From assembly GCA_002269645.1 (NCBI GenBank), contig NIVC01002856.1:1-64000 (forward strand): 64,000 bases of DNA, given 5' to 3'. The first letter of the stretch is position 1. Every line of letters starts with the position of its first letter. This DNA comes from Macrostomum lignano (lineage: Eukaryota). The translations under genes were made by a program, and so were the position numbers. The notes under the pieces were generated by a model. That model was not told where the DNA came from. It did no database searches and was given only the letters and a program-made list of their open reading frames with translations. This document shows, piece after piece, positions 2,537 to 64,000 of this stretch.

Positions 2537-3703
2537 TCAGTCTTGCGGGTCCTGGCAGTGCTCGCAGTCTGCCATGGCCTCAACGTATTCCTCGATCTGC
2601 ACAGTGACCTCGTGAAGTTGAAACCGCTGCTTAACCAGCCTTGTGGCCGCCAGCAGCAACTCCTGCTGATTAGCGTCCTTAACAACGGCCAGGTGCGCGC
2701 TGACGGCCGTTTTGTTCATTGTGAGACTCCACAGGCGCAGGTTGTGCACTTCGATAACGCCTGGCACAGAGGCGAGCGTCTCCTTGACAATGTTGAAGTC
2801 CAAGCCCTTGGGTGTAGCCTCCATCAGCACGCGCATAGTGTCGCGCAAAATGCTGAAAGTGGTGAACAGGACCAGGATGGAGAACAGGAAGGTGCAGATG
2901 GGGTCAGCCAGTTTCAAGTCAGGTCGGTAGTAAATAACAAAGGCCGCACAGAGGACGCCCAGACTCTGCAAGAAGTCGCCAACTACATGAATAAAAGCTG
3001 CCCGAACGTTGATGTTTTGGTCTGAATGACCGTGATCATCGTTGCCGTGATTGTTGGCGTGACTGTGACCGTGGTCAGTGCCGTGACTGTGACCGTGCTG
3101 ATGCAGCGTCACCGCCATGATGATGTTAACCGCCACACCAACACCGGACGTGATGAGCATAGCCTGGCCTTGAACTTCGAAGTTCTGATTGACAACGCGT
3201 TCAATTGCCAGGTAAACCAGTATACCGGTGACCACCCAGATCATGAGCACAGAAACCAGGGCCCCGACAACTTCGGCCCGGTGCCAACCGAAGCTCATTC
3301 TCTTCGTGGCCGGCCTGGAGGCCAGGTAGAGCGCCAGCAGGCTAATCATGAAGCTGGCAAAGTCCGTCAGCAGGTGAGCAGCGTCCGTCATGATGGCCAA
3401 ACTGTTGGCGATGGCGCCGCCAACGATCTCGCCGGCCATGAAGAGCAGGCAGAGCAGCGAGGCGACCCAGAGCTTGCGCCGGGCCGTGCGCTGGCCGAGC
3501 GCCAGCAGCTGTTCCCTGACCTGCTCGCTGGCGTGGCAGTGCAGCCCGGCCTCGCTGTCCGAGCTGGTGCCCCGCTGCATGGCGTGGTAGGACGGACCGG
3601 CGTGAGACACCAGACTGCTCTTCTCGCTGACATTGGCACCGTGGCTTGGCATTGTGGACACAATAATCAATGTGTGCGCGTGACAACTGCAAAGTTTAAT
3701 CAT
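2537..3703 (-). CDS. SLC30A2: ZnT/SLC30 (CDF family) zinc transporter, ZnT2/3/4/8-type, single exon; real start may be the ATG at 3652 (MPSHGAN...)
   Basis: 388-aa ORF with six hydrophobic segments. It has the CDF signature SLAIMTDAAHLLTD, a His-rich loop HQHGHSHGTDHGHSH, TM5 HVVGD (HD-HD Zn site), C-terminal domain HNLRLWSLT..HLAV and terminal CEHCQDPQD. Subfamily call is from recalled similarity. Confidence 0.93.
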   Translation of the reverse strand: MIKLCSCHAHTLIIVSTMPSHGANVSEKSSLVSHAGPSYHAMQRGTSSDSEAGLHCHASEQVREQLLALGQRTARRKLWVASLLCLLFMAGEIVGGAIANSLAIMTDAAHLLTDFASFMISLLALYLASRPATKRMSFGWHRAEVVGALVSVLMIWVVTGILVYLAIERVVNQNFEVQGQAMLITSGVGVAVNIIMAVTLHQHGHSHGTDHGHSHANNHGNDDHGHSDQNINVRAAFIHVVGDFLQSLGVLCAAFVIYYRPDLKLADPICTFLFSILVLFTTFSILRDTMRVLMEATPKGLDFNIVKETLASVPGVIEVHNLRLWSLTMNKTAVSAHLAVVKDANQQELLLAATRLVKQRFQLHEVTVQIEEYVEAMADCEHCQDPQD

Positions 3704-11289: not shown

Positions 11290-21463
<10,174 letters not shown>

Positions 21464-38700: not shown

Positions 38701-41700
38701 AGACTGAGGCTGGGTAGCTGCAGCTGCAATGGATACTGCTGCATAGAGTGTTTACAGACTGAGGCTGGGTAGCTGCAGCTGCAATGGATACTGCTGCATA
38801 GAGTGTTTACAGACTGAGGCTGGGTAGCTGCAGCTGCAATGGATACTGCTGCATAGAGTGTTTACAGACTGAGGCTGGGTAGCTGCAGCTGCAATGGATA
38901 CTGCTGCATAGAGTGTTTACAGACTGAGGCTGGGTAGCTGCAGCTGCAATGGATACTGCTGCATAGAGTGTTTACAGACTGAGGCTGGGTAGCTGCAGCT
39001 GCAATGGATACTGCTGCATAGAGTGTTTACAGACTGAGGCTGGGTAGCTGCAGCTGCAATGGATACTGCTGCATAGAGTGTTTACAGACTGAGGCTGGGT
39101 AGCTGCAGCTGCAATGGATACTGCTGCATAGAGTGTTTACAGACTGAGGCTGGGTAGCTGCAGCTGCAATGGATACTGCTGCATAGAGTGTTTACAGACT
39201 GAGGCTGGGTAGCTGCAGCTGCAATGGATACTGCTGCATAGAGTGTTTACAGACTGAGGCTGGGTAGCTGCAGCTGCAATGGATACTGCTGCATAGAGTG
39301 TTTACAGACTGAGGCTGGGTAGCTGCAGCTGCAATGGATACTGCTGCATAGAGTGTTTACAGACTGAGGCTGGGTAGCTGCAGCTGCAATATATACTGCT
39401 GCATAGAGTGTTTACAGACTGAGGCTGGGTAGCTGCAGCTGCAATGGATACTGCTGCATAGAGTGTTTACAGACTGAGGCTGGGTAGCTGCAGCTGCAAT
39501 GGATACTGCTGCATAGAGTGTTTACAGACTGAGGCTGGGTAGCTGCAGCTGCAATGGATACTGCTGCATAGAGTGTTTACAGACTGAGGCTGGGTAGCTG
39601 CAGCTGCAATGGATACTGCTGCATAGAGTGTTTACAGACTGAGGCTGGGTAGCTGCAGCTGCAATGGATACTGCTGCATAGAGTGTTTACAGACTGAGGC
39701 TGGGTAGCTGCAGCTGCAATGGATACTGCTGCATAGAGTGTTTACAGACTGAGGCTGGGTAGCTGCAGCTGCAATGGATACTGCTGCATAGAGTGTTTAC
39801 AGACTGAGGCTGGGTAGCTGCAGCTGCAATGGATACTGCTGCATAGAGTGTTTACAGACTGAGGCTGGGTAGCTGCAGCTGCAATGGATACTGCTGCATA
39901 GAGTGTTTACAGACTGAGGCTGGGTAGCTGCAGCTGCAATGGATACTGCTGCATAGAGTGTTTACAGACTGAGGCTGGGTAGCTGCAGCTGCAATGGATA
40001 CTGCTGCATAGAGTGTTTACAGACTGAGGCTGGGTAGCTGCAGCTGCAATGGATACTGCTGCATAGAGTGTTTACAGACTGAGGCTGGGTAGCTGCAGCT
40101 GCAATGGATACTGCTGCATAGAGTGTTTACAGACTGAGGCTGGGTAGCTGCAGCTGCAATGGATACTGCTGCATAGAGTGTTTACAGACTGAGGCTGGGT
40201 AGCTGCAGCTGCAATGGATACTGCTGCATAGAGTGTTTACAGACTGAGGCTGGGTAGCTGCAGCTGCAATGGATACTGCTGCATAGAGTGTTTACAGACT
40301 GAGGCTGGGTAGCTGCAGCTGCAATGGATACTGCTGCATAGAGTGTTTACAGACTGAGGCTGGGTAGCTGCAGCTGCAATGGATACTGCTGCATAGAGTG
40401 TTTACAGACTGAGGCTGGGTAGCTGCAGCTGCAATGGATACTGCTGCATAGAGTGTTTACAGACTGAGGCTGGGTAGCTGCAGCTGCAATGGATACTGCT
40501 GCATAGAGTGTTTACAGACTGAGGCTGGGTAGCTGCAGCTGCAATGGATACTGCTGCATAGAGTGTTTACAGACTGAGGCTGGGTAGCTGCAGCTGCAAT
40601 GGATACTGCTGCATAGAGTGTTTACAGACTGAGGCTGGGTAGCTGCAGCTGCAATGGATACTGCTGCATAGAGTGTTTACAGACTGAGGCTGGGTAGCTG
40701 CAGCTGCAATGGATACTGCTGCATAGAGTGTTTACAGACTGAGGCTGGGTAGCTGCAGCTGCAATGGATACTGCTGCATAGAGTGTTTACAGACTGAGGC
40801 TGGGTAGCTGCAGCTGCAATGGATACTGCTGCAGTAGAGTGTTTACAGACTGAGGCTGGGTAGCTGCAGCTGCAATGGATACTGCTGCATAGAGTGTTTA
40901 CAGACTGAGGCTGGGTAGCTGCAGCTGCAATGGATACTGCTGCATAGAGTGTTTACAGACTGAGGCTGGGTAGCTGCAGCTGCAATGGATACTGCTGCAT
41001 AGAGTGTTTACAGACTGAGGCTGGGTAGCTGCAGCTGCAATGGATACTGCTGCATAGAGTGTTTACAGACTGAGGCTGGGTAGCTGCAGCTGCAATGGAT
41101 ACTGCTGCATAGAGTGTTTACAGACTGAGGCTGGGTAGCTGCAGCTGCAATGGATACTGCTGCATAGAGTGTTTACAGACTGAGGCTGGGTAGCTGCAGC
41201 TGCAATGGATACTGCTGCATAGAGTGTTTACAGACTGAGGCTGGGTAGCTGCAGCTGCAATGGATACTGCTGCATAGAGTGTTTACAGACTGAGGCTGGG
41301 TAGCTGCAGCTGCAATGGATACTGCTGCATAGAGTGTTTACAGACTGAGGCTGGGTAGCTGCAGCTGCAATGGATACTGCTGCATAGAGTGTTTACAGAC
41401 TGAGGCTGGGTAGCTGCAGCTGCAATGGATACTGCTGCATAGAGTGTTTACAGACTGAGGCTGGGTAGCTGCAGCTGCAATGGATACTGCTGCATAGAGT
41501 GTTTACAGACTGAGGCTGGGTAGCTGCAGCTGCAATGGATACTGCTGCATAGAGTGTTTACAGACTGAGGCTGGGTAGCTGCAGCTGCAATGGATACTGC
41601 TGCATAGAGTGTTTACAGACTGAGGCTGGGTAGCTGCAGCTGCAATGGATACTGCTGCATAGAGTGTTTACAGACTGAGGCTGGGTAGCTGCAGCTGCAA

Positions 41701-43900
41701 TGGATACTGCTGCATAGAGTGTTTACAGACTGAGGCTGGGTAGCTGCAGCTGCAATGGATACTGCTGCATAGAGTGTTTACAGACTGAGGCTGGGTAGCT
41801 GCAGCTGCAATGGATACTGCTGCATAGAGTGTTTACAGACTGAGGCTGGGTAGCTGCAGCTGCAATGGATACTGCTGCATAGAGTGTTTACAGACTGAGG
41901 CTGGGTAGCTGCAGCTGCAATGGATACTGCTGCATAGAGTGTTTACAGACTGAGGCTGGGTAGCTGCAGCTGCAATGGATACTGCTGCATAGAGTGTTTA
42001 CAGACTGAGGCTGGGTAGCTGCAGCTGCAATGGATACTGCTGCATAGAGTGTTTACAGACTGAGGCTGGGTAGCTGCAGCTGCAATGGATACTGCTGCAT
42101 AGAGTGTTTACAGACTGAGGCTGGGTAGCTGCAGCTGCAATGGATACTGCTGCATAGAGTGTTTACAGACTGAGGCTGGGTAGCTGCAGCTGCAATGGAT
42201 ACTGCTGCATAGAGTGTTTACAGACTGAGGCTGGGTAGCTGCAGCTGCAATGGATACTGCTGCATAGAGTGTTTACAGACTGAGGCTGGGTAGCTGCAGC
42301 TGCAATGGATACTGCTGCATAGAGTGTTTACAGACTGAGGCTGGGTAGCTGCAGCTGCAATGGATACTGCTGCATAGAGTGTTTACAGACTGAGGCTGGG
42401 TAGCTGCAGCTGCAATGGATACTGCTGCATAGAGTGTTTACAGACTGAGGCTGGGTAGCTGCAGCTGCAATGGATACTGCTGCATAGAGTGTTTACAGAC
42501 TGAGGCTGGGTAGCTGCAGCTGCAATGGATACTGCTGCATAGAGTGTTTACAGACTGAGGCTGGGTAGCTGCAGCTGCAATGGATACTGCTGCATAGAGT
42601 GTTTACAGACTGAGGCTGGGTAGCTGCAGCTGCAATGGATACTGCTGCATAGAGTGTTTACAGACTGAGGCTGGGTAGCTGCAGCTGCAATGGATACTGC
42701 TGCATAGAGTGTTTACAGACTGAGGCTGGGTAGCTGCAGCTGCAATGGATACTGCTGCATAGAGTGTTTACAGACTGAGGCTGGGTAGCTGCAGCTGCAA
42801 TGGATACTGCTGCATAGAGTGTTTACAGACTGAGGCTGGGTAGCTGCAGCTGCAATGGATACTGCTGCATAGAGTGTTTACAGACTGAGGCTGGGTAGCT
42901 GCAGCTGCAATGGATACTGCTGCATAGAGTGTTTACAGACTGAGGCTGGGTAGCTGCAGCTGCAATGGATACTGCTGCATAGAGTGTTTACAGACTGAGG
43001 CTGGGTAGCTGCAGCTGCAATGGATACTGCTGCATAGAGTGTTTACAGACTGAGGCTGGGTAGCTGCAGCTGCAATGGATACTGCTGCATAGAGTGTTTA
43101 CAGACTGAGGCTGGGTAGCTGCAGCTGCAATGGATACTGCTGCATAGAGTGTTTACAGACTGAGGCTGGGTAGCTGCAGCTGCAATGGATACTGCTGCAT
43201 AGAGTGTTTACAGACTGAGGCTGGGTAGCTGCAGCTGCAATGGATACTGCTGCATAGAGTGTTTACAGACTGAGGCTGGGCAGCTGCAGCTGCAATGGAT
43301 ACTGCTGCATAGAGTGTTTACAGACTGAGGCTGGGCAGCTGCAGCTGCAATGGATACTGCTGCATAGAGTGTTTACAGACTGAGGCTGGGTAGCTGCAGC
43401 TGCAATGGATACTGCTGCATAGAGTGTTTACAGACTGAGGCTGGGTAGCTGCAGCTGCAATGGATACTGCTGCATAGAGTGTTTACAGACTGAGGCTGGG
43501 TAGCTGCAGCTGCAATGGATACTGCTGCATAGAGTGTTTACAGACTGAGGCTGGGTAGCTGCAGCTGCAATGGATACTGCTGCATAGAGTGTTTACAGAC
43601 TGAGGCTGGGTAGCTGCAGCTGCAATGGATACTGCTGCATAGAGTGTTTACAGACTGAGGCTGGGTAGCTGCAGCTGCAATGGATACTGCTGCATAGAGT
43701 GTTTACAGACTGAGGCTGGGTAGCTGCAGCTGCAATGGATACTGCTGCATAGAGTGTTTACAGACTGAGGCTGGGTAGCTGCAGCTGCAATGGATACTGC
43801 TGCATAGAGTGTTTACAGACTGAGGCTGGGTAGCTGCAGCTGCAATGGATACTGCTGCATAGAGTGTTTACAGACTGAGGCTGGGTAGCTGCAGCTGCAA
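35712..43900. repeat. 55-bp tandem array, about 149 copies, 8.2 kb, very homogeneous
   Basis: Unit GCTGCATAGAGTGTTTACAGACTGAGGCTGGGTAGCTGCAGCTGCAATGGATACT; period checked at 36001/36056. Confidence 0.98.
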
Positions 43901-44916
43901 TCAGTTAAATCAGTTGAGATCTGATTTTAAAGTGCACTCGCTGACCAGGCAGTTTGCAGCGCTACTCAACCAGCAGGGTGATCTCAAGACTCACAGTCAC
44001 GAATGGCAGTACTTACTGGGATTTTGTGGACGAGAGAGAAAGAAGAGAATGAGAAAATCTGTGAGCAGCCGGCCAGGAAATTGTCATTGTGCCACCCGAT
44101 ATCTCCAAGGACTCGCTTGCTAACTCAATTTCGTGGCCGCGTACATGCTTGCAAATCTGAGCTCATTTGTGCGCTGACATGAACAAAAACTCGTACTATT
44201 CAACCTGAAACGTGTCATTGTCGTCTACTTGTCTACTTAAGAGGTGGGCTCGTGTCTGTAATAATACTGGGCTGCAGCTCCCCTCTCCTGCCGAAATCCG
44301 TGCCCACAAAGTGCCTTAGGTGTTCAGGCTTGGCCGTATATTATTGATTCCCAGGGAGCAGCCCTAACCCCGGCTCACCCGCCCGCGCTGTCCACTGCCC
44401 GACAGACCTTCATATCGTTTTCCACCGCTGAGCACTATACTCTCTCTTCTCTGTCCCTCTGTGTTTGCGAATCCTGACAGTTCTGAGTCTCTCGAAGAGA
44501 AACTCTCTGGCAAAGGACTTATTAATTATTCATTCGGGGCCCGGCTCCCTGCTGACTGATGAAGGAGTGAGAGTTCGAGTCAACTGACCCGTAAGTGAGC
44601 AGCAGCTAGCTGAGAATCCGGTGTGGCAAATGCTTGAGTTGTTGGAGAAGATCCAGTTTTCATAATGTATTGCTTGTAATTCCAGTACTGTACCTGCAGC
44701 AGCCCCGGTACCTTATTAGCTTGTGTCTTTTGAAAAATACCGGAACAGGAACCTTTTATATTTGAGCACAATACTTGCTGTTATTATCCTGTCTTATCCT
44801 GGATGCTGATCCAACGGTCATCATTCTGGATAACTTCTATAAAATAGAGCACAATCTTTGAAATGATTTCTTATTCAATGTTCCCCGTTCTTCGACTACT
44901 AGTTCCGATCGAGGTA

Positions 44917-45655
44917 CAAGACCTCAGGGGTAGCGGCACTCACGGGTGGACCGAGACCTCAAGGGTAGCGGCACTCACGGGTGGACCGAGACCTCAGGGG
45001 TAGCGGCACTCACAGGTGGACCGAGACCTCAGGGATAGCGGCACTCACAGAGGACCGAGACCTCAGGGGTAGCGGCACTCACAGGTGGACCGAGACCTCA
45101 GGGATAGCGGCACTCACAGGTGGACCAAGACCTCAGGGATAGCGGCACTCGCGGGTGGACCGAGACCTCAGGTATAGCGGCACTCACAGAGGACCGAGAC
45201 CTCAGGTATAGCGGCACTCACGTGTAGACCGAGACCTCAGGGTTAGCGGCACTCACGGGTGGACCGAGACCTCAGGGGTAGCGGCACTCACGGGTGGACC
45301 GAGACCTCAGGGGTAGCGGCACTCACAGAGGACCGAGACCTCAGGGGTAGCGGCACTCACAGAGGACCGAGACCTCAGGTATAGCGGCACTCACGTGTAG
45401 ACCGAGACCTCAGGGTTAGCGGCACTCACGGGTGGACCGAGACCTCAGGGATAGCGGCACTCACAGGTGGACCGAGACCTCAGGGGTAGCGGCACTCACA
45501 GGTGGACCGAGACCTCAGGGGTAGCGGCACTCACAGGTGGACCGAGACCTCAGTGATAGCGGCACTCACGTGTGGACCGAGACCTCAGGGGTAGCGGCAC
45601 CACAGGTGGACCGAGACCTCAGGGTTAGCGGCACTCATAGAAGGACCGAGACCCT
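44917..45655. repeat. 35-bp minisatellite (GAGACCTCAGGGGTAGCGGCACTCACAGGTGGACC), about 21 copies
   Basis: Period checked at 44941/44976. Confidence 0.96.
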
Positions 45656-46469
45656 AGGGGCGGTCGGGATGGATCCTGCGGTGTGATATTAAGTCTGGTA
45701 CGGTAGTTTATTAAAGAATACAGAAAATATTACATCGCATGCATAGTCTCTGGGCCCGTTGAACCACCAATAGTTATCCAGTTAGGTATTTTTTGTACAC
45801 TGGCAGCAACTGTCGGAAGGAAGTTAACTGCACTTTCCAGAGCGGGACGATCCGGGTTGCCCTCAAAAAGCGGTACTTGTTGGTGGTTTGGTGTGCCAGA
45901 TCCTTGTGGAATGTTTTCTGCATCATTTTTCATGCCAGCGCCTGACAGAATCTCCGGATTGCGGGGTAAAAGAGGAAACTCGCTACCCAGGACACCCCCG
46001 CTAACAACCTCCAGCATCCGCTGCACTTCATTGTCCCCTCTTACCCACTGGCATTCCGCTTTACTGCCAGGTGCCAGAGGTGTCTTTACAAATAATCTAT
46101 TTTCGAATTCATCCGTACCCGGATGGTCTGGAAAACTATTTGCACACCCGCAACCCTCGCTGTTACTCTCACTTTTGAATCGGAAAAAGCATTTTGTAAT
46201 TTTTCCCCAAAATCTGACTAAATCCTGGTCTTAAGTTTGCGGCTGTAGTTTCCCACGCTTTCAGTCCAGATGCTAACTATTGATATCCATGAACTAGGCA
46301 GACATGAGCTTTCTGTAGTAACTATAAGTTCGTTTGTTAATAGCTAAACTTTGGCAGTTAACAAAGTGTTCTGCACCATCTAAGCATAATAATACGCTCG
46401 TAATAATATAGCTCGTAGTAATAATATTAGTAATAATAATACTAACAATATTCGCAGAAGGTTGCCTTC

Positions 46470-49595: not shown

Positions 49596-49780
49596 TTATC
49601 TTTCGAAAATGTTGAAGCTTTTTTGTATTGCTTTAGCGACTTTTAGCGAAAGCTTTAGCTGAAGATAACACAAAATTAGTCAAGAGCTTGCTCCCAATAG
49701 CTTGAAAATAGCTGCGTCCGTTGTTGCTGTGATTGTTCTAATGATAAAGCCCTGTCTCTCTCCTCCCCTCCAATTTCAGA

Positions 49781-52700
49781 ATGTCGGACAGACAACAGCT
49801 GATCGAGGACCTTCGCCGTCAGGTTGATGAACTGCGCGCGGAGGTCCGCGCCAAGGACAGGCGCATAGCGGAGCTGGCCTCCCAGCTGGACAAGTACCAG
49901 TCCGTGTTCCGCAGCGGCGGCTCCCCAGTGCACGGGCCGCAGTGCCGGCGCAACCGGGGCTTAGGCATCTCGGCAGAGCCGCAGAATGAGGACACGCTGG
50001 CACTCATGCCGGAGGGCCGGACTCACGCCAAGGACGATCGGTAAGACAATGTGCCAATCAGCTAATTGAGGATCAATCTGTCTCATTGGCGTCACAATTG
50101 GTGAATCGCAGATATATCTCCGTATTACTCGTATAGATTGTGATAGACTTTCAGAAAGACTATTCTCTTGTCATTTGTCAAATTGGAACTTGTATCCTGT
50201 AAATTTCTCACGAAATAGGTCCCAACAAAGACTGACAAAAGCCAGGATCTATTTCATGAGATATTCTTGGCTTTTTTTTAGGTTTTATGAATATTTTATA
50301 AAAGCTAGCGCGCGCTTTTGAGGCTGATTTGCCTATGGTCCAACCTTGCATGGACTCTTACCAAGGACTTTTTTTCCCAGACAGATCCATCAGTTTTGGC
50401 CATAGACAAAAGCTAGGAGACCAACGAAAGTGAAAGCTTCGCAGTAAAGTTCTTGAATGAAGCTCGTTGTATCTTTTATTGAAATTTTATGATGTTCATA
50501 TCTATTAAGCCAATAAAATCGATCGACATCTACGACGGCTAGTAATGTTAGAGAGACATAAAACTTTGTGCAGTAGCTTCGCTATGGAAGTGAGCGCGAC
50601 TGCTTGCAGATAAGGAGATGGGTCCTTTGAAGCCAGTCTTAGTCCATGTGTTCTGGTGTCAAAGGCTTCAAAGATAGGAAAGTTCAAACCTCACTTTTTG
50701 CAAGCAAATGCAAAAAAGTGGCCTTTTCACCGTCTTGTCGGACACAAGAGTCTCGCTTTTCTACCTTCGATGTAGGCAAGCGCGCAATATAATGATTGCG
50801 CAGAGAGTTGAGTAGCAGAAAACCTGCACTTCATTAAGAAAAATTGGTGCGACAAGATAGTGGAGAGAAATGACCATGGGTACTGCAGAGCCTATTTCAA
50901 GGAGAGATTCGCTAAAATCGAGTGAATCTATGACCTCCTACTGCCACTAGTAGTGAGTACAGGGCGTTTATTGAAAAAGCGTGTGTTTTTTCCAGGGACT
51001 ACTCAATTCTCGGGACGGGAAACGGCCAAATCATGCAGAAAAAAGATGGAGGCCGATTTTCTCTGTTCTCTGCTGATCTTATGTTTTATCGCAAGAGCTT
51101 CAGCTTTTCACTATGTACACAAAATTTATCCCTCTTCAACTTCCTGTAGCCTGTTTCTACTCAAATAATTTCGGATAAATGCTAGGAGACATTTTATACA
51201 GTACCCCTTTAATACACAAACTCGATGCTTGATAAGCCAAGTGCATCTGTTGTAGAAGTCTATGGGAAACATTGAAGCAAGAAGTGAAAGCTTGTATTAT
51301 ACGAGAAGTTATGCAACATAAGATATAAGATTAACAAAACTGTTGTATATACGTAGTCAATACATGTATACCAAGATTTGGAAAACGATCGCGCTAGAAT
51401 ACACACTATTGTGCACTAGAATTATTCAACAACACCAAATGCATAAGTACAAGAAACACAACATTCACAACAAGCATATAAAGAACAATAAACACGATAA
51501 GAGCAAAAGGCAAGAGAACCACAAGCAAGTGCAAAACGCACATGAACCAGAACAAACAAAGTCAGCATAACAAAGTATCCCAATAGTAGTGAGCAAATAT
51601 AAGCAATGCGACAAATCGAATTCGTAATCCAGTAGTCTCAGTCGGTATCAATCGCGCTTATAAACGAGACGAACTGCGTAGCTTTGTGATTTTACGATCA
51701 CTTGCGTCTGGTGTTTGTTCTGCAGTTTTGCAGTTTCGCACAAGTCCTTTGAAAAAGCAGTTTGATAGGCGACGAGTCACCGAAGTGGTATGAATGTCCT
51801 TGTCTGGAAAGAAATATTCGGCGATAGCATTGAATATCTGTTGCACACGGGTTGCACAGCTTGGTGAATATGATGTGAAGCTAGCATAACAAAGGCGTGA
51901 GAATTGGAAAAGCCATTCTGGTGGATGCGCTAGCTTTCCACGGGAAACAAGCTCCGTAAATTCGCATGGTTCATTTCGTGCTGCTTCTGCGTCAGCGGGA
52001 ATTCCTTCCTTTGCTGCAACGTAGCCTAGGTAGTTAAAACCAAAAAGATAAATGAAAGTAGATATATATATACGAATATTATTATACTCGTGCAAGAATA
52101 CAAAATTGCTTGAAGAAGCAATTTGAAACTTACCTGAAATGTAATATAGGGCAGCATTCTTCCAACTCGTCCGGTTTAAAATTTCTTTCGGCAGACAAAA
52201 CGCGACGGACTTTTGGTTTTCTCGCTAATGCTAAAATTATGGATGTAAGCAATGCGATGGAGAATCGTTTGTATGTTGGTAGCGCAATACGTGTACAGTT
52301 TATGTATTAACAAATTTTCACATTCCGATTGAAAAAAACATGATGGGGGAATTGCAACGTCAAAGACGGACGGCGGGTCGACAGATCGCTCATATCTGCT
52401 GCGTTTTATCATTGGCACTGATATTGGCCAGTGCTTCTCGCATACTGCCATATGCGGTGTTGGATCCTGTAGAATTATGAGCGGTGTGCTACAGAAACAA
52501 AACCTCGCAAAACTTGTCCTTCCGAACAAGAGAGACAATGCACTGTCTCTCCAACTTGCCCAGCAGAGAGTAAAATCACGAATTTCATTATTACCAGTTT
52601 ACTACTCGACTCACCTTGATGACATTTGGTAGAGCCAGTCGCCATTTTTCCTTCTCTATAGGATTTTTCGTTTTTTCGTTCAAATAGTTCGACTTGCATG

Positions 52701-55700
52701 ATTGCACACAGCATTTCCTTGGCATGAATGCGAAAAAACGCAAAGCAAAATTAGGAAGAGCAAATGAAAATTTCTGTCGTGTCGTGGCTACCCAGCCAAG
52801 TTAACTCACAGAGGAGTCCAAAGTTGACTATTTATTTGCATTCTATGGTATCAGTCCTTACCTTATAGGCCATCGTATAATACAAGCTTTCACTTCTTGC
52901 TTCAATGTTTCCCATAGACTTCTACAACAGATGCACTTGGCTTATCAAGCATCGAGTTTGTGTATTAAAGGGGTACTGTATAAAATGTCTCCTAGCATTT
53001 ATCCGAAATTATTTGAGTAGAAACAGGCTACAGAAAGTTGAAGAGGGATAAATTTTGTGTACATAGTGAAAAGCTGAAGCTCTTGCGATAAAACATAAGA
53101 CCAGCAGAGAAAAGAGAAAATCGGCCTCCATCTTTTTTCTGCATGATTTGGCCGTTTCCCGTCCCGAGAATTGAGTAGTCCCTGGTTTTTTCCAACAATT
53201 ATTTTCCACGGCTTCGTTTCATGGACTTCTGAAGTAGGAGGAACCTGTACTTCCCGCCCGTTTGAATTTTATTGACCGCTATTTTAAGAATGCTTTAGTT
53301 TTCGAAGTCTGGTACGTTGCAGATTTGTTTTTATCCTCAAAGTTTCAAAGATTTTATTCTTTTTCAAGATAAAGTGACTAGCATTTATAGCTTTTGCTCC
53401 GTCAAAAACTTTGCACAAAATTACTTTTTTAAGCGTTATTCTACTGCAACTTGCAACAAGTCAGTTGAGTCATACTATTATGTTTTCGATTAACAAGCAG
53501 CTGCAGGGGGGCTCCAGGCATTCCGCTATACCTATACCCTGGCGACCACACACAGCTAGTGCTGCGGTGCCGCGCAGGGAAATCCGGTGGTGCCGGTGTC
53601 CTCAGCGTGGTCCCCCTCCGGAGAGTCCAGGAGGTGAAAGTGGATGGTCGCTCGTCCGGTGGCCCTTAGGTAGGAACTGGCAGAGATTCTCGGGCCTAAA
53701 ATGTCGGAAAGGTCCGGGTTTGGGCTGAGGTAGGTGAGCCTGTCCTGAGCAGAGGCGGGGCATTCACAGATGAAGTGCTCCGCATTTTAGCACCGGAGAG
53801 GCAGAAGGATTTTTTTCACCGCGAATTTTCCCTGGTAGCAATGGCTGCCTGGAAAAACAGCCATTCTCTAAGAGGGCCGTGGTCACCGCCCTGATGTTTC
53901 TGCGGTTGAGTCCAAGCAGGACCCTGGGGAGGTCGTGGGAAGGGCAGGGGACTGCCATGCGGGATTGCCGGCCGTCAGAGCTCACAGCCAGTAAAGCCAG
54001 AATATATGCACCTGAAGCAGATACTCGTACATAATCAACTGCTTGAACATTTCCCGTCAAAGAGCATGCCGTCGACTTCAATTTCAGAGAGAATTTCTTC
54101 AAAAAATCATCTGCACCTCTCCCAGTGCAATTCAATTCCATTGAGTGAGAGAGAACAGTGAGGGAATTAGACAAGAAGCGAGGAAGGCGCTTGGGGCGTC
54201 GAATTCGCCTCGTGCTGCGCGGTGCCCACCTTCTCGACTTTCCACCGAATGCTTTATAAAAGAGTCCTAAAACGTGAATCGGGCGCTCCCGGCTAAAGCA
54301 GATTGAAAGTGCTGCTCAGCTCAGCAGTTGTTCTGTTCCTCGCTTCCCCTCTATCCTCAGCTTCTCTGCCATAGGAGCGGAAAGAAGAGTCAGGAGGGAA
54401 TAGGAGTCAGAGGAGGACGGCTCAGCCGGGGAAAAACTGCTATGGCTTTTGCGTCTTGTAGCCGAGCTGCTCTCGAGCTGTAGGTGAGCGCAGTCCATGG
54501 GTACTCTCAGAGAGTTGCAGTTCGCCTTGCAACTGAAGCTGCAGGAGCTTCAGCAACGGGATCGGCTTATTGACGAGCTCGAGTCTGAGCTGGACGCTCG
54601 GGAATGCCTGATCGAGCGGATGCAGGAGCAGATCGAGCGGCTGCAGTCGCTGCTGGAGCGCTGCAGGCCGGACATCAGCCCGCCAAGGCTGTCAGCGGCC
54701 GCCGCTCCGGCCAGCTGGTGGCGCAGGCCGCAGCAGCTTCGGGTGAAGCGGACAGCGGTCAGCAGCGAGTCCACGACCGCCATCGCCAGCCATTCAGCTG
54801 TTCGGAGGGCGCAAGTTGCGGGCGCCAGGTACTCGGGGATCGTGGAGACTGTGCCGAGATGAGGCAACTTTTCAACAAAAGCGATGTCAGATATGCACAA
54901 TATTGTAGCTTTTGAGATCCGTCTGCTGACTTCTTACTGGACGTTATTGTAGAGGGGCTCCGGCAAGATTGTAGCTTTTGAGATCCGTCTCCTGACTTCT
55001 TACTGGACATTACTGTAGAGGGGCTCCGGCAAGATTGTAGCTTTTGAGATCCGTCTGCTGACTTCTTACTGGACATTGCTGTAGAGGGGCTCCGGCAAGA
55101 TTGTAGCTTTTGAGATTCGTCTGCTGACTTCTTACTGGACGTTATTGTAGAGGGGCTCCGGCAAGATTGTAGCTTTTGAGATCCGTCTCCTGACTTCTTA
55201 CTGGACATTACTGTAGAGGGGCTCCGGCAAGATTGTAGCTTTTGAGATCCGTCTCCTGACTTCTTACTGGACATTGCTGTAGAGGGGCTCCGGCAAGATT
55301 GTAGCTTTTGAGATCCGTCTCCTGACTTCTTACTGGACATTGCTGTAGAGGGGCTCCGGCAAGATTGTAGCTTTTGAGATCCGTCTGCTGACTTCTTACT
55401 GGACATTGCTGTAGAGGGGCTCCGGCAAGATTGTAGCTTTTGAGATCCGTCTGCTGACTTCTTACTGGACGTTGCTGTAGAGGGGCTCCGGCAAGATTGT
55501 AGCTTTTGAGATCCGTCTGCTGACTTCTTACTGGACGTTGCTGTAGAGGGGCCCCGCTCTGGCCGTCGCAGGCGACCACGGACAGCTAGTGCTGCGGTAC
55601 GGCGCAGAGAGGTCTCTGGTGATGCCATTAAATAACGGAATAGCTGGCAGAAATTCTCGGGCCTGAAAACTTCTGGGAGGTCCGGGTTTGGGCCGAGTTA

Positions 55701-58700
55701 GGTGAGCCTGTCCTGAGTAAAGGCGGGGCATTTAAAGATAGAGTGCTCCGAATTCTCAACACTGGAGAGGCAGATGAAGATTCCCCTGGAGTTAGCGATG
55801 ACTGGAAAAACAGCCATGAGCTGATAGGGCCACAAGGACAGCCTGATGTTCCTGCGGTCGAGTCTGAGCAGGGCCCTGCGGAGCGCGGAAGAGGGACAGG
55901 AGGCAGCAGCGCCGTTAGCCTCTATTGCTTTCAGTGTATTCTCATTTACTGTAAGATTATGAAGACTCTACCGATTTAATTGTTACACACGGCTTCATAA
56001 CTATAAATTTCACAGAACCCGCGAAGTTATCAAACGAGCCATCATGGAGAACGCGTTTATGAAGAATCTGGAGAATGGACAGATCTGCGAAATTATTGAC
56101 TACATGTACCCGCTGTCTCACGCCACTGGCGCCCTCATCATTAAGCTGGGCGAAGTGGGATCGCTGGTCTACGTCATGGAAGGTGAGCTGTCACTGTTTT
56201 GTCGAATAGGAAAAAGCTGATGCGTACTCACTGAACTTAATCATGTCTAAATATGCAACGGTGGTATTTTTCTGTCTGACGGGGTATTCTGTTGTCTGGT
56301 AGGGGTATTCTGTCTGGTAGGGATATTCTGTCTAACAGGGGTATTCTGTCTAACAGTGGTATTCTGTCTAACAGTGGTATTCTGTCTAACAGGGATACTC
56401 GATCTAGCAGAGGAATCTGTCCATCATGTGTATCCCTGTTGAACAGATGAGGCAAACTTTAAAATTCATAAATTTGAAACAACTGCAGAGGGCAAAGCTG
56501 AGGTGACGAATACAAAGGACGAGAAAATCAATGAGATCGGCCCCTGCACAGTGTTCGGGGAGCTGGCCATTCTGTACAACTGCAAGCGGACGGCTACAGT
56601 TAAGGGTGAGCAAATCTCGCCTGTTTATATTCAGTTTAAATGAGTTCGATATAATGCTGAGCTGGGCCTTTCCTGCAGCAATCACCAACTGCAAGCTCTG
56701 GGCTATCGATCGGCAGACTTTCCAATCGATCATGATGAAGACGGGCATGCTGAAGCAGAAAGAGTACATCGACTTTCTCAGCAGGTGAGCTCCACCGAAA
56801 CCTTTTACGAGATTAGTTCGACTTTTTTGGAAAGCTTGTTGTTATTTCTCTTATGGCATATTGTCTTGAGGCAATAAGACAGAGTCGTATGACTCAGGGG
56901 TGTAGGGCCAAGATCATTCATTGGGGCGCCAAGGGCGCCAGCACCAAGGGCGCCAGCACCAAGGGCCCCTTGTTCTGTGGCTACGCTCCTGCTTTGATTT
57001 ATGATGTTTGGCAAGTAATTAGTCCCAATTTTGCCTCCACTCCAGCGTTCCAGCCTTCAAGGAGCTGCCCGATGAGACGTTGAGCAATCTGGCCGACGTA
57101 CTCGAGACCGACCACTATCCGGACGGTGAGTACATCATCCGGCAAGGTGCCAAAGGCAACACGTTCTACATCATCGCCAAGGGCACCGTCAGGGTGACGA
57201 AGCGCGATTCGGCAACCGGGGAGAGCGTGTTCCTGCGCAACATGGGCCGCGGAGACTGGTTCGGCGAGAAGGCGCTGAGCGAGTGAGTCTGGGGTCTCAT
57301 AATTTTGCTTGTACTCAGCAACAGTTAACCTCCTCCCCCTTAACTCACGCTATCACGCGGCACAGAAGTTAGGCAATGTCATTGGTGATACAGTATCGTG
57401 TTAAGGTACTACCGGCTTGCAAAGTGTAAAAGTGTCTCTATCCTTGAATTTTAGGATTGAACAATACGAGCTCGTAAACTAAGAAATGCAAGTCCCCGTT
57501 ATTGTCCCTACTTTCATGAGCATGATTCTGCGCACCCCATTTCCGTGTACCTTTTTGAACCATCCTTGAGCGAAGTATTTTTTTAGTTTCAGACAAGCCT
57601 TTGCACTCATTTAATCGTCTAACTAATCGTCTAATTAATTATGTAAAACATAAAAGAAGCGTCCTGTCAGACATAAAAGAAGCGTCATGTCAGACATAAA
57701 AGAAGCGTCATGTCAGACATAAAAGAAGCGTCATGTCAGACATAAAAGAAGCGTCATGTCAGACATAAAAGAAGCGTCATGTCAGACGTAAAAGAAGCGT
57801 CATGTCAGACATAAAAGAAGCGTCATGTCAGACATAAAAGAAGCGTCATGTCAGACGTAAAAGAAGCGTCATGTCAGACGTAAAAGAAGCGTCCTGTCAG
57901 ACGTAAAAGAAGCGTCATGTCAGACGTAAAAGAAGCGTCCTGTCAGACATAAAAGAAGCGTCATGTCAGACATAAAAGAAGCGTCATGTCAGACATAAAA
58001 GAAGCGTCATGTCAGACGTAAAAGAAGCGTCATGTCAGACGTAAAAGAAGCTTCATGTCAGACATAAAAGAAGCGTCATTTCAGACATAAAAGAAGCGTC
58101 ATGTCAGACATAAAAGAAGCGTCATGTCAGACATAAAAGAAGCGTCATGTCAGACGTAAAAGAAGCTTCATGTCAGACAAAAGAAGCATCATTTCAAACA
58201 TAGAGGATTTCATTGAGAATTGCTAGGCTTACGGGGGAATTGCTGAGATGTCAAAGCTGAGGTCAGAAGCTACATGCAGTTTATTCAAAAAAATTATTTC
58301 ATTTTTTGTTGGCTCCCCAACGGGAGGGCGCTGATTAGTTTAGTTTAGTATATTAGTAAATAGTTTGGTATTAATCTAAAATTCTTACCCATATATCCAA
58401 GCCACTAATGCACGCACAATCTTGTGCTTGTTCGATCCTCAATTTTGTTTCAGCGAAGACGTGCGAACTGCCAATATCATAGTTGAAGATTCAGAAGGCG
58501 TCGACTGTCTCGTGCTGACTCGCGAGTAAGTAATAAGTTAGTTAATGAGTGACGTCGAGTCAGATAGGGAGGGACCTCGAGTTAGATATGGAGTGACGTC
58601 GAGTCAGATTGGGAGTGACGTCGAGTCAGATTGGGAGTGACGTCGAGTCAGATTGGGAGTGACGTCGAGTCAGATTGGGAGTGACGTCGAGTCAGATTGG

Positions 58701-61700
58701 GAGTGACGTCGAGTCAGATTGGGAGTGACGTCGAGTCAGATTGGGAGTGACGTCGAGTCAGATTGGGAGTGACGTCGAGTAAGATTGGGAGTGATATCGA
58801 GTCAGATTGGGAGTGACATAGAGTCAGATTGGGAGTGACGTCGAGTCAGATTGGGTCCTGACGTCAAGTCAGATTGGGAGTGACATCGAGTCAGATTCGG
58901 AGTGATATCGAGTCAGATTGGGAGTGACGTCGAGTCAGATTGGGAGTGATATCGAGTCAGATTGGGAGTGACGTCAAGTCAGATTGGGAGTGACATCGAG
59001 TCAGATTCGGAGTGACGTCGAGTCAGATTGAGAGTGACGTCGAGTAAGATTGGGAGTGATATCGAGTCAGATTGGGAGTGACGTCAAGTCAGATTGGGAG
59101 TGACATCGAGTCAGATTCGGAGTGACGTCGAGTCAGATTGAGAGTGACGTCGAGTAAGATTGGGAGTGATATCGAGTCAGATTGGGAGTGACATAGAGTC
59201 AGATTGGGAGTGACGTCGAGTCAGATTGGGAGTAACGTCAAGTCAGATTGGGAGTGACGTCAAGTCAGATTGGGAGTGACATCGAGTCAGATTGGGAGTG
59301 ACGTCGAGTCAGATTGGGAGTGACGTCAAGTCAGATTGGGAGTGACATCGAGTCAGATTGGGAGTGACGTCAAGTCAGATTGGGAGTGACGTCAAGTCAG
59401 ATTGGGAGTGACATCGAGTCAGATAGGGAGTGACATCGAGTCAGATTGGGAGTGACGTCGAGTCAGATTGGGAGTGACATCGAGTCAGATTGGGAGTGAC
59501 ATCGAGTCAGATTGGGAGTGACGTCGAGTCAGATTGGGAGTGACGTCGAGTTACTCAGTGGGTGACGGGAAGTAACTTTCTGGGTGGAAAAGAGTTGAAT
59601 ATAAGAAATTTACAGCCTTTTAAAAAAACCTCTTTTAGGTCTTACAAGCAGTTGATTGGAGACCTAATCATCTTGGAGAGAAAGTACTCTGACGATACGA
59701 CTCCCAAGTGAGTTGCCTGAGTAAATTTTTTGCGAAATAATCACGACTGCTAAGAAATAGCTTTTTAAGTTTAAAACTGAATAGTTGTTTCATTATCAAC
59801 CATATTTATAGGATATTATTATATCCTAGTAGCCTAGTAGCAACAATAAATTCACGGAAACAAGCAAAAATGTACACTCCAACGCTCTTTAGACGCTCCG
59901 AAGAATTTCGCGGGCTGGCTCTCAGAGACCTGTACATTGTGGCAACCCTGGGAGTCGGTGGCTTTGGCCGAGTTGAACTGGTAAGAACAATTATGTTAAG
60001 ATTAGCTGTTAGACTGGTATCTCTGGTTACGTCTATAAACTTATATACAAAACGGCCCTTTAAAGTCCAGATTCAAGAGCATGTTTTTGTAGGTATAATT
60101 CGGTACATTCATGCGTCCATTTGAGTAGCAAACTAGAGCACAATCGTACATATGTAAAGTAAATCGTTGGCTCAAGTGTCTCTTCTTAACATCCCGAAGC
60201 CTCAATTGCTAGACAGACTCGAGATCTGAAATCTATAAGTCAAAGCAGGCCGTTTTTTATTTGAAAGGCTGGAAAGGAAGGATAGGGCGAACGGCAAAAG
60301 CGAGCAACTGTTATTTAGCAGATGAAGCAGGAGATTCTATTTATCCCATCTAAGCTATTATGCCCTCGCCCAGGGACCAAGGCTCCCTCTAATCCCTTTG
60401 ATGATCCGTCTGGAGCGAGCTGCCCCTCCCCACGCCCGCACGAACAGGTGCGCATCAACAACGACAACAATCGCAGCTTCGCCCTGAAGCAGTTAAAAAA
60501 GCAGCACATTGTTGAGACCCGCCAGCAGGAGCACGTGATGAACGAGCGGAGCATCCTGGCTGATACCAACTGCGAATTTATTGTCAAGTAGGTTTGCTGC
60601 CTTTTAAGTTAGCCGTTTTCTGGTTGTAAACAGGGATTTTACTTCCTGAATTTTGGCATTGTTTTCAGATTGTACAAAACTTTCAAGGACAGGAAATATC
60701 TCTACATGCTGTTGGAGTGCTGCCTCGGAGGCGAGCTCTGGACTGTGCTCAGAGACAAGTGAGATTTATCGGTCATCCTTAATTTAATTAATTGGTTGCA
60801 GATTCTTTTGTAACTGCAACTACAGTTGTATTGATTTTTTGTACTTTTAACAAGAGAAAGGACTGCATTGTGGCAGTATTGCTTATTTCTCAATCTATTA
60901 AATTGACTGGGTTATTAGCTACGGAGGCGACCCAGAGAATGACTAAATGCGATTACAGTGCAGGCCTAAAATCGCCAATACAATGGCTCTATCAGAATCC
61001 TTACGAGCGAGTGAGCGTGCTTAGAAAAGTATTTGTAATAAAACTAAACTTTGAGACTCTTTTTGAAGCAAAACAGTGGACTCGCAACATCTCAATGCAC
61101 TTCTCGATGGAGTATCTCTCCGGTGAGATGAACACCTGATTCTCAATTTAGCCGTAGACTGAAATACCAACTTAGTATTCCCATGCACAAATACCCCAAG
61201 TGTTTCCACTCCCCGCCTGTAAAAGTTTGCCACCAAGGAAGTCACCGCAGCCTCTCAGACTCGTTCGCTTCCGTTCTGAGCAGCCTGTCTTGGCCCACCT
61301 CGCAAGAGCTTTTTTCAAACTTAAAGCACTGCATAATCAACCGAGACAAGCATTCGCAGAGCCTCTGTTCGTGCTCAACACCGCAGCAGAAGCTCATAGC
61401 TCTGCAATATGAAGCGGCCGCTGCTAGAAGGGCTTGTTTTTGATGGCGAAAAAAGTTCAAAACATTTTGTTCGTAGGAAAAACTTCAAAGCAGTCAATAA
61501 GCAAAAGGTTATGCGAATCCGAATCCAACGTAAATTTACAGAGATTAATCTGCCAAGCATATCTTATTTTTGTTATCCTCATGTTTGATTGAACAGCCTG
61601 TCAATCTCTGTAATATTTTGTTAGCTCAGCTAGGTGCCTTTCCTGCTCCGTTCCCGTAGATCTTACAAGTTAGAGCTGTTTAGCTTGAGCTAAACTTGTT

Positions 61701-63867
61701 TGATGGATGAATTCTGAATAATGATTAATTCAATATCCGATCAATGCTTCTTCTTCTAGGCATCCAATCTTCTTTTAGCTAGCTAAGACCCTTCGAGCGC
61801 TTTCATCGAAGACAATTATTGCTGTATTCATTGATTTGGTTCAGTACCTGAATGCTCAGATGTTCAAGTATTTATTCAATAATTAGCATCCCCTTTCATG
61901 ATTTTTGCCAGGGGTCATTTCGACGATTCAATGACTCGCTTCTATATCGGCTGCGTGGTGGAGGCCCTGACCTACCTGCACAGGCGGGGCGTGGTCTACC
62001 GGGACCTGAAGCCCGAGAATCTGCTGCTGGACTCCACCGGCTACTGCAAGCTGACGGACTTCGGCTTCGCTAAGCGCATCGGTTTCGGCAAAAAGACTTG
62101 GACTTTCTGTGGCACGCCCGAGTACGTGCCACCGGAGGTCATACTCAACAAGGGCCACGATCTGTCTGCGGACTTCTGGTCTCTGGGCGTGCTTATCTTC
62201 GAGCTTCTAACTGGTACTCCGCCATTCGTCGCTTCGGACCCCATGAAGACGTACAACATCATCCTCAAGGGCATCGACGCCGTGGATTTTCCCCGCCGAG
62301 TAGGCCGCAACGCGCAGAACCTCATCAAGAAGCTGTGTCGGTGAGTTTTGCCGGTTTGTCATTATTTTATGCGGTAGAATTTCAGATGGGGCCAAATTTA
62401 CTACACTACACTGGATTCAAAAGTTGAGATTGACAGAAAAAGTACAAAGTACGGTATGTTTGTTTGCAGGGGCGCCTAGGGGCTGCCGAAAATCAAGATG
62501 ATCCCCAGGCAGCGAAGAGACAAGCAGTCAGGCCATTTGGCTGAACCCTGATACGGAAGCAGGCACACAATCCCACAGATTGTACAGCGGCCCTGACTTT
62601 GTTTTCGTCAGTCAGCACACACTCAGTGCCTTGTGTACTGGCCCTCATGGGCGAGAATTGAACTAAATCCAAACAGTTTAACGTGGCCAGCTACTTTGGC
62701 GCTAGAATCAGACGGTACTGCTACATCTGCCCCTTGAAGAGTACATTTCTTTGATGAGGAAAAAATCAAGAGGCGTTGTACACTCTGTGTGAGCACAGTG
62801 CGCATGTGTACGAATTCTTTGGTATCACTTTTTAGAGGCAGTGGCTGTGTGCAACCTGGCGCACTTTAAGCGACATTGTCACACAACCGGCGAGAGGCAT
62901 TACTGCCTATTCCACCGACACCCCTGAGCAGGCACACAAGCGCGCGGATACGTACGCAGGCACACACTCACACAGAAATGTACAGCGGCCCTAAACTTTA
63001 TTTATCGTTAGGCATGTACACTTCACTGTGCCTTGGGGGCTGGCCCTCAAGAGCATTAATTGCACGAGCAGAGCCAAGCCGAAATTCCAGTTTAGCCCTG
63101 AATCAATGTGACTGCACTTGGAATCGAGCCTGAGCCGCTGGCACATCAGAGCGCTGCGCCAGACCACTGGACTACGCCCCCATACTTTTGCGTCATATAT
63201 ACTCTTAGAATGCAGTGATGCCTAAACTACAACGATTAAATATACTCAACAACATTAAAAAGTCGCCACCTTTGACAGTGCGCAGTAAATTCTAGCTCAG
63301 TATTGACTTTTGAGTGACGCAACTTGCGCCACGCGACGCAGAGTTGGGCTGGGTGGGGAGGGATTGGGAAGAGCGGAGGGCGAAGATTGGATAGATTGAA
63401 GCTTCCGCTCGGTTTTCATTGTTTTTTCAAGCATTTTTTAATATAAAAATGGTTAACCAGGTGATAGACTGGTCCAAAGACACTGCTCACTGGGGCAAAG
63501 GGTGGCGAATTTTCAATGTTGCTGAGTATAATTTAGTTCTTCCTTTGATGCCAATTCCTAAAAATCCTCCCAAATTCGATTTTTTTCCTCAAATTTAAAC
63601 ATTATTCACGATTCTAACTCTCACGTTGCCACCCCCTTTGCCCCCCCCCCTAATCCTGAAGTCAACATTTGCCCCCGCCCCTAAATCCTGAAGCGAACTA
63701 AATTTCCATAACTTGATTGTCCGCTTGATTTTTTCAGCGACAGTCCATCTGAGAGGCTGGGGTTTGGCCGCGGCGGAGTGATGGAGGTGGCCCATCACGT
63801 CTGGTTTGAGGGCTTCAACTGGGCCGGGGTGAAGTCGCGATCCCTCACTCCACCGTTCCTGCCGAAG
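49781..63867 (+). CDS. PRKG1: cGMP-dependent protein kinase (PKG I / foraging / EGL-4 type), isoform using the upstream first exon; 3' end lies beyond the window
   Basis: Exons 49781-50040, 56016-56182, 56489-56605, 56679-56784, 57046-57282, 58454-58525, 59639-59707, 59893-59980, 60448-60587, 60669-60758, 61912-62340, 63738-63867 total 1905 nt in one frame with GT-AG introns. Motifs: [75 protein letters not shown]. Confidence 0.96.
50993..53184 (-). mobile_element. P-superfamily (THAP) DNA transposon, internally deleted, long TIRs
   Basis: TIRs 50993-51304 and 52873-53184 (312 bp, about 3 mismatches, ends CAGGG/CCCTG). Perfect 8-bp TSD GTTTTTTC (50985-50992, 53185-53192). THAP-like VCEKHWP..DPPSVF (about 52330-52470) and a transposase C-terminal-like segment [24 protein letters not shown] (51658-52027). 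Confidence 0.88.
53500..54000 (-). mobile_element. LINE 3' fragment (I/R1-like C-terminal region with decayed CCHC knuckle)
   Basis: Reads [13 protein letters not shown]...[13 protein letters not shown]; homologous to 55545-55920. Confidence 0.65.
54497..54828 (+). CDS. PRKG1: Alternative first coding exon of PKG (I-beta-like leucine zipper plus autoinhibitory segment)
   Basis: [33 protein letters not shown]...[10 protein letters not shown]. The donor AG|GTAC at 54828/9 is phase 2, the same as the upstream exon, and compatible with exon 56016. Confidence 0.85.
54903..55550. repeat. 66-bp tandem array, about 10 copies
   Basis: Period checked at 54903/54969. Confidence 0.95.
55545..55920 (-). 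mobile_element. LINE 3' fragment, second diverged copy
   Basis: Reads [10 protein letters not shown]...[22 protein letters not shown]; shares blocks such as GGTGAGCCTGTCCTGAG and CAGCTAGTGCTGCGGT with the 53.5 kb copy. Confidence 0.65.
56285..56400. repeat. Short degenerate 18-bp array (GGTATTCTGTCTAACAGT), about 6 copies
   Basis: Directly visible. Confidence 0.8.
57646..58200. repeat. 23-bp minisatellite (TAAAAGAAGCGTCATGTCAGACA), about 23 copies, PKG intron
   Basis: Period checked at 57651/57674. Confidence 0.95.
58545..59552. repeat. 22-bp minisatellite (GGGAGTGACGTCGAGTCAGATT), about 45 copies, PKG intron
   Basis: Directly visible. Confidence 0.95.
62830..63180 (-). mobile_element. tRNA-derived SINE copy in the last visible large PKG intron (a second partial copy lies at about 62580-62660)
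   Basis: Head GGGGCGTAGTCCAGTGG...GGCTCGATTCC; shared body. Confidence 0.75.
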
Positions 63868-64000
63868 GTGAGCCGGTTATCTAATTGTAACTGTTTAATT
63901 TAAATTTTAAACCGTTTCAATTTTAATAATTCGACTGTGTATTTTGATTGACTTATTCTTCATCAGTTTTCCCAGTTCACCTGGGGTCCTTCTAGGTGTT

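Follow-up and report, generated by a model that had tools for sequence, protein, structure and literature searches.

The DNA under study comprises the first 64,000 nucleotides of contig NIVC01002856.1 (assembly GCA_002269645.1) of the flatworm Macrostomum lignano, read on the forward strand and hereafter called the window. Positions 49781 to ~63876 hold the 5′ part of a gene for a cyclic GMP (cGMP)-dependent protein kinase (PKG), the 3′ end of which lies beyond the window. Sequence comparison identifies this gene as an ortholog of PKG type I (PRKG1 of vertebrates, foraging of insects, egl-4). Two homologous 5′ coding exons, here termed exon A and exon B, precede a single series of exons coding for the cGMP-binding and catalytic parts. 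This arrangement recalls that of mammals, where the choice between alternative 5′ exons of PRKG1 yields PKG I-alpha and I-beta, proteins that are identical apart from their first ~89 and 104 residues, respectively (PMC10299703). The two-exon arrangement had been described in an earlier note made from the letters of the sequence alone. When the sequence was re-read, the exon coordinates, exon sequences, reading phases, splice sites and shared acceptor position were all as that note had given them, and every motif quoted for the two exons was present.

Exon A (49781..50040, forward strand) extends from an ATG at 49781 to 50040 and is 260 nt long, equivalent to 86 codons plus two bases (87 amino acids with the split codon). 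It ends at a donor (cg/GTAAGA, the slash marking the splice point) that ranks at the 96.5th percentile. By heptad analysis, residues 1-43 (49781..49909) form a predicted leucine/isoleucine zipper of six unbroken heptads with the motif LDKYQSVF at its end; 11 of the 13 a/d positions are hydrophobic, a pattern matched by 0/5000 shuffled sequences. A predicted autoinhibitory (Ai) pseudosubstrate (49946..49981), located by alignment to the Ai motifs of homologs, is of the alpha type: like RAQGISAEP, it has a lone Arg at P-3 and Gly at P0 (pattern R-x-x-G-I; I-alpha: RAQGI). A search of the PDB with exon A (E<=10) returned no I-alpha zipper entry. Against the Pfam family PKcGMP_CC, exons A and B score 21.6 and 16.5 bits, respectively, under the 35-bit cutoff, and this family was not used as evidence of membership. 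The exon A donor itself provides an immediate in-frame stop (cgG TAA ga; 50039-50043), so that an unspliced transcript would encode only an 87-residue peptide made up of the zipper and the pseudosubstrate.

A polypyrimidine tract and 3′ splice acceptor (49755..49780, forward strand; ctctctcctcccctccaatTTCAG/A) adjoin exon A on its 5′ side, the acceptor (ctcctcccctccaatTTCAG/A) falling one base 5′ of the ATG. On a position weight matrix built from the acceptors of this gene, the site reaches the 96.7th percentile of AGs, and its TTTCAG/A agrees with the M. lignano trans-splice acceptor motif [T/C]TNCAG (PMC8629364). It is either the acceptor of an intron in the 5′ untranslated region or a spliced-leader (SL) trans-splice acceptor. 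The earlier note had presented exon A as a first exon. A strong acceptor adjoins the ATG of exon A, which is therefore first among the coding exons without necessarily being the first exon; it is probably not the true first exon, and its mRNA may be trans-spliced to the SL. The terminal ATG of the SL (sequence from PMC8629364) would be out of frame with the exon A ATG, and a search of the 64,000-nt window for the SL RNA sequence did not find it. Upstream of exon A, ~4 kb of unique sequence is preceded by large satellite arrays.

Exon B (54497..54828, forward strand) begins with an ATG at 54497, ends at 54828 and measures 332 nt, or 110 codons plus two bases (111 amino acids with the split codon). 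An in-frame TGA (54485..54487, forward strand) lies four codons 5′ of the ATG and blocks read-in from upstream, so that exon B is a translation-start exon. Aligned from residue 1 with amniote I-beta, the exon B product is identical at 28 of 43 positions, exactly the figure given in the earlier note. The crystal structure of the human I-beta zipper (3NMD) is matched at E=1.5e-10. The a/d core of the predicted zipper (residues 4-55; 54506..54661), LLLKLRILLRIMILL, has the pattern of the 3NMD core, LLLKLRILLKILLYI, polar K/R positions included, and its hydrophobic pattern was reached by 2/5000 shuffles. The I-beta block LIDELE-ELD, the acidic surface that binds IRAG and TFII-I, is retained in exon B bar one residue. 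The predicted pseudosubstrate (KRTAVSSES; 54746..54772), again placed by alignment to the Ai motifs of homologs, is of the beta type: like KRQAISAEP and KRTAISAEP, it has Lys-Arg at P-3/P-2 and Ala at P0 (pattern K-R-x-A-V; I-beta: KRQAI).

In both exons the final codon is split after its second base, and both join in frame to one and the same acceptor (tttcacAG/A) at 56016. Either join leads into the cyclic nucleotide (cNMP)-binding domain A (CNB-A) of PKG I, the beginning of which is encoded by the first common exon (56016..56182, forward strand). A predicted zipper in either exon and an Ai motif between zipper and CNB-A give the layout typical of PKG I. The isoform-specific part ends just before T-R-E-V-I-K, which corresponds to S-K-D/E-L-I-K in vertebrate PKG I. 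The boundary between specific and common parts therefore falls at the same residue position as in the human isoforms, after residue 89 in I-alpha and after residue 104 in I-beta (isoform-specific residues: 89 and 104; PMC10299703). An invertebrate beta-type exon from a Logan contig (L002) appears to stop in the same phase, two bases into its last codon. Local alignment of exons A and B with one another gives a score of 55, which one of 1000 shuffles attains, and the two exons are by this measure detectably homologous. A tblastn search of the whole window and a six-frame regular-expression search for pseudosubstrates, both directed at a third N-terminal exon, returned only A and B. The locus is compact: the stretch from exon A up to the common exon measures 6.2 kb. 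The intron that separates exon B from the common exon harbors a minisatellite (54898..55556) of ten 66-bp units at 96% identity, each with a tgtAG. In a 1029-bp scaffold from the TARA Oceans metagenome (L001), an alpha-type N-terminus and the start of CNB-A are encoded in a single open reading frame (ORF), and the planktonic animal concerned seems to have no intron at the isoform boundary.

The remaining common exons (56489..63876, forward strand) were obtained by chaining downstream coding blocks with homologs as guides and code for the rest of CNB-A, CNB-B and the kinase domain. They are located at 56489-56605, 56679-56784, 57046-57282, 58454-58525, 59639-59707, 59893-59980, 60448-60587, 60669-60758, 61912-62340 and 63738-~63876. 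All ten common-exon donors conform to GT[AG][AG]G, and nine of them to GT[AG]AG. Pfam recognizes two cNMP_binding domains (2.8e-37) and a Pkinase domain (4.6e-72) in the spliced model, and human PKG I-beta (7LV3) can be aligned with the common part from one end to the other (residues 2-549 of the latter; E=2e-243), compared with ~1e-75 for the catalytic subunits of PKA. The CNB-A exon (56016-56182) on its own distinguishes PKG I (~1e-15) from PKG II (1.4e-5). Furthermore, both phosphate-binding cassettes of the model contain Arg-Thr-Ala, that of CNB-B reading DVRTANII. The Thr of this cassette marks cGMP selectivity.

For assignment of the two exons to isoform classes, N-termini were assembled from vertebrate I-alpha and I-beta, from alpha- and beta-like exons of arthropods, from the flatworms Mesocestoides and Dicrocoelium, from plankton contigs and from a coral. 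Profile hidden Markov models (HMMs) were built from the vertebrate and arthropod N-termini, with the flatworm sequences left out. Exon A scores 59.6 bits with the alpha HMM versus 28.1 bits with the beta HMM, and reaches 60 bits on the arthropod alpha profile, while exon B scores 58.4 bits with the beta HMM versus 21.7 bits with the alpha HMM, and 75.4 bits with the vertebrate-beta HMM. In neighbor-joining (NJ) trees (103 columns) the bipartition that places exon A with the alpha-like and exon B with the beta-like sequences is found in 200/200 bootstraps. The same split is recovered from the zipper only (91/100), from the linker and Ai motif only (88/100) and after removal of the Ai motif (99/100). 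Exon A groups with an M. lignano paralog, with other flatworms and with alpha sequences of arthropods and vertebrates, and exon B with the beta exons of vertebrates and one of an invertebrate. A-type N-termini on the common exon occur in the M. lignano paralog, a cestode and a trematode, and both classes are found in arthropods. A word-indexed protein search with exon A or exon B joined to the common exon returned one A-type match and vertebrate beta fragments only; the M. lignano database entries were found by exhaustive HMMER representative search. The MGTL..ELQ start is not diagnostic of the beta class, being present on alpha-like exons of krill and other arthropods and on the coral exon. 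The sequence comparisons support an assignment of exon A to the I-alpha class and of exon B to the I-beta class, and the parallel that the earlier note had drawn with the vertebrate isoforms is borne out by the HMM scores, the bootstraps and the shared boundary residue.

We suggest that the M. lignano gene very probably carries two alternative 5′ coding exons, one of the alpha and one of the beta class, on a single PKG I body, with the choice between them set by promoters. Exons A and B would be tandem duplicates, and each would contribute a start codon of its own, followed by a leucine zipper for dimerisation and a pseudosubstrate for autoinhibition. No AG 5′ of the exon B ATG keeps the reading of exon A in frame. 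Because there is no in-frame upstream acceptor, and because of the TGA, transcripts with exon A would have to skip exon B to be productive, and exon B would need internal initiation. Transcripts initiated upstream would contain exon A and join it directly to 56016, and exon B would be used only by transcripts initiating between A and B. The isoform choice would then be set by the transcription start site, with exon A additionally acquired through cis-splicing or SL trans-splicing at the acceptor before its ATG. Judged by this anatomy, both exons are likely to be expressed and to be used in a mutually exclusive manner. The products would be two kinases with identical cGMP-binding and catalytic parts, and the differences would be confined to the ~87 or ~111 N-terminal residues. 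By analogy with mammalian I-alpha and I-beta, the two exons may determine dimer partner or anchoring specificity and cGMP sensitivity.

Several observations weigh against this proposal. The exon B donor (cag/GTACTC) is weak, with 2.2 bits (84th percentile) compared to 8-12 bits for the other donors of the gene, and differs from the GT[AG]AG of nine of the ten common-exon donors (the tenth being GTAGG); it is still the best in exon B among those ending two bases into a codon. Exon B furthermore has no LDKY/F-R/Q-S/V-V motif, and its pseudosubstrate contains AVSSES instead of AISAEP. Exact look-up of the exon A ORF (87 amino acids) and the exon B ORF (121 amino acids) in public assemblies gave no match, and the sole database model that includes exon B skips the 54828 donor. 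The alpha label, which in the earlier note rested on position and one motif, now has the backing of the mixed-taxa HMM and NJ results, but is marginal on vertebrate-only profiles (28.6 bits for alpha versus 24.8 bits for beta), and the pairwise z of exon A is 7.9 with vertebrate alpha and 9.6 with vertebrate beta. The label is carried by the alpha-like sequences of arthropods and flatworms. Trees built by NJ over ~100 coiled-coil columns are, moreover, prone to convergence. Lastly, the first in-frame AG after exon A is a cryptic site at 54511 within exon B, so that a tandem product of A and B is conceivable.

The database model with exon B, P0166 (UniRef A0A1I8GQY6), is annotated as a 'cGMP-dependent protein kinase' of M. 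lignano and is ~99-100% identical to the window exons, including exon B. Four substitutions in the aligned exons suggest a second near-identical copy or an allele. P0166 runs exon B on to 54850 and adds exons at 55547-55618 and 55828-55913 before 56016, which would give a beta isoform with ~60 extra residues between the pseudosubstrate and CNB-A. This route maps in frame, and its third donor (cc/GTTAGC) likewise leaves two bases of a codon, in phase with the acceptor at 56016. Its donors, however, score -6.2, 2.7 and -1.0 bits and its second acceptor -1.1 bits, whereas the 54828 donor of the direct join has 2.2 bits, and the acceptor of the first extra exon is the tgtAG in the last 66-bp unit of the minisatellite. 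None of the homologs has anything corresponding to the 60 added residues, and the direct 54828-56016 join restores a homolog-like spacing between pseudosubstrate and CNB-A. P0166 also errs elsewhere: its first eight residues are absent, the 56606-56678 intron is apparently retained (with a two-residue gap), and 20 residues of a kinase exon are dropped. We regard the extra exons as an annotation artefact and consider such a beta isoform improbable. A second M. lignano PKG, P0164 (A0A1I8FAZ3), is a paralog in which an A-type N-terminus is joined to the common exon, with 49% identity to exon A over the N-terminus and 73-90% in the best-matching common exons.

It is very improbable that exon B is a relic, unused or in decay, and that protein is made from exon A alone. 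The weak donor, the degenerate C-terminal zipper and ISAEP motifs and the absence of other flatworm B-type sequences from the results of limited searches would fit such a fate, but the exon has kept an intact 110-codon ORF with its ATG aligned to residue 1 of I-beta, a complete zipper a/d core with its polar K/R positions and an intact K-R-x-A-V pseudosubstrate, and its 75 bits on the vertebrate beta profile imply conservation over more than 500 million years, which is unexpected for neutral sequence. An independent exon duplication within flatworms, with the likeness to vertebrate alpha and beta arising by convergence, draws on the shortness and convergence-proneness of coiled coils and pseudosubstrates, on the coral N-terminus that mixes both classes (57.8 versus 56.7 bits) and on the finding that exon A is pairwise not nearer to vertebrate alpha than to vertebrate beta. 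A and B nevertheless never cluster together: they are split in 200/200 bootstraps and also in the zipper and linker partitions separately, A falling with arthropod alpha-like and B with vertebrate beta exons. A published survey gives the same bilaterian dating for PRKG1 (PMC8373072), and we hold convergence to be highly improbable. Splicing of exon A to the cryptic acceptor at 54511, by which A and B would be combined in one mRNA for a kinase with two zippers, is in frame, and the site (tactctcAG/A) stands at the 92nd percentile of AGs. Tandem zippers and pseudosubstrates are, however, found in none of the homologs retrieved and inspected, the MGTL start lines up with the first residues of I-beta, and two pseudosubstrates would be functionally odd, which makes this product exceedingly improbable.

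The proposed pair of alternative exons resembles vertebrate PRKG1 in that two homologous 5′ coding exons, each with an ATG, a zipper and a pseudosubstrate, are set on one common exon, with the boundary just before [ST][KR][DE][LV]IK and, as proposed here, with the logic of alternative promoters. Exon A shares the R-x-x-G-I-S-A-E-P-Q pseudosubstrate with vertebrate I-alpha. Vertebrate I-alpha, unlike exon A, possesses the redox-sensing Cys42 (LHKCQSV), where exon A has Tyr (LDKYQSV). As exon A, I-beta and the arthropod exons have Tyr or Phe at this position, it is vertebrate I-alpha that looks derived. I-beta in vertebrates has LDKYRSVI and AISAEP, where exon B has IERLQSLL and AVSSES. Differences from vertebrate PRKG1 also include the compactness of the flatworm locus and the acceptor at the exon A ATG, with possible trans-splicing. 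In many arthropods the foraging gene (for/dg2), similarly to the flatworm gene, combines exons of an alpha-like type (LDKFQSV...RKQRAQGISAEPQ) and of a beta-like type (IDKFRQVV...KRTAISAEP) with one body. In Drosophila, foraging has alternative N-terminal exons, with the zipper- and Ai-encoding exon 4 upstream of exon 7 of the second class (PMC10299703). The P2/P4 exon of Drosophila melanogaster reportedly has no conserved zipper or Ai motif, whereas the flatworm beta exon has both, and insect N-termini, unlike those encoded here, often carry long disordered extensions.

More generally, the pair corresponds to the N-terminal tandem-exon substitutions surveyed by Martinez-Gomez et al. (NAR 2021; PMC8373072), in which duplicated 5′ coding exons are used through alternative promoters. 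In that survey the PRKG1 pair is traced to Bilateria and is explicitly among the events with equivalent exons across this group. The invertebrate example given there is a beetle, and the portion of the text consulted mentions no flatworm. The antiquity of the dual-exon design, which the earlier note had put forward, is accordingly right but already published, and the M. lignano pair adds a member. The exon pair would stem from a duplication predating the protostome-deuterostome split. Literature searches found no paper on flatworm PKG isoforms and nothing usable on which of the alpha and beta exons comes first in human PRKG1. A search for an alpha-like remnant 5′ of the beta exon in a run-on gene model from a fish (P0183), aimed at the exon order in vertebrates, gave scores too weak to be used.

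The coral sequence (P0215; Acropora cervicornis KAK2563745.1) combines a beta-like start (MGTSLRELQHALQEK) with LDKYRSV and an alpha-like pseudosubstrate (RNRGQGISAEPQ). It scores 57.8 bits with the alpha and 56.7 bits with the beta HMM, and its pseudosubstrate, RGQGISAEPQ, is of the alpha type. This N-terminus may resemble the state before duplication. A broader scenario can be drawn up in which the pair arose in the bilaterian stem from one mixed, Acropora-like exon, the flatworm kept both descendants, and its isoform choice lies between SL trans-splicing and an internal promoter. We offer this only tentatively and consider it unlikely as a whole. If it were true, PKG isoform choice by SL trans-splicing (exon A) versus an internal promoter (exon B) would be a mode undescribed in vertebrates and insects, and the flatworm would retain an unusually complete copy of both descendants of the mixed exon.

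PKG I-alpha and I-beta are not equally sensitive to cGMP, and their zippers dock to different proteins, a difference that underlies much of the cGMP signalling in mammalian smooth muscle and neurons. After vertebrates and arthropods, the flatworm pair provides a third data point, on the lophotrochozoan side, and supports the published bilaterian origin. With transgenesis and RNA interference available, M. lignano is a tractable organism for the study of the roles of these N-termini outside vertebrates. The analysis also flags an erroneous public gene model; it overturns nothing.

Additional genes and repeats can be observed in the window 5′ of the PKG gene. A satellite array of 8.2 kb (35710-43901), with ~149 copies of a 55-bp unit at 99% identity, is located ~6 kb upstream of exon A and is followed by an array with 35/139-bp units (44919-45660). 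Together, these arrays take up much of the gap between an upstream kinase-like gene and the PKG gene. An intronless ORF of 388 amino acids (2540-3703, reverse strand) with Cation_efflux and ZT_dimer domains and a His-rich loop encodes a zinc transporter of the ZnT/CDF type. Exons of a rhodopsin-family G protein-coupled receptor (Pfam 7tm_1) are found at ~19624-21460 on the forward strand, and the ORF at 11200-11556 might be a further exon of such a receptor. Tandem repeats occur upstream of the receptor exons at 11631-11918, 14497-15206 and 17258-19153, with a 15-bp unit in 19 copies, TAGA in 177 copies and 20/40-bp units in 47-95 copies. Finally, two adjacent long ORFs lie on the reverse strand at 24027-25930. 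The upstream one shows a weak Pkinase match (1.1e-8; HRSGFVHHDIKPDN...DFGFAKQ), and on account of this match the region is taken as a separate kinase-like gene on the strand opposite to that of the PKG gene.

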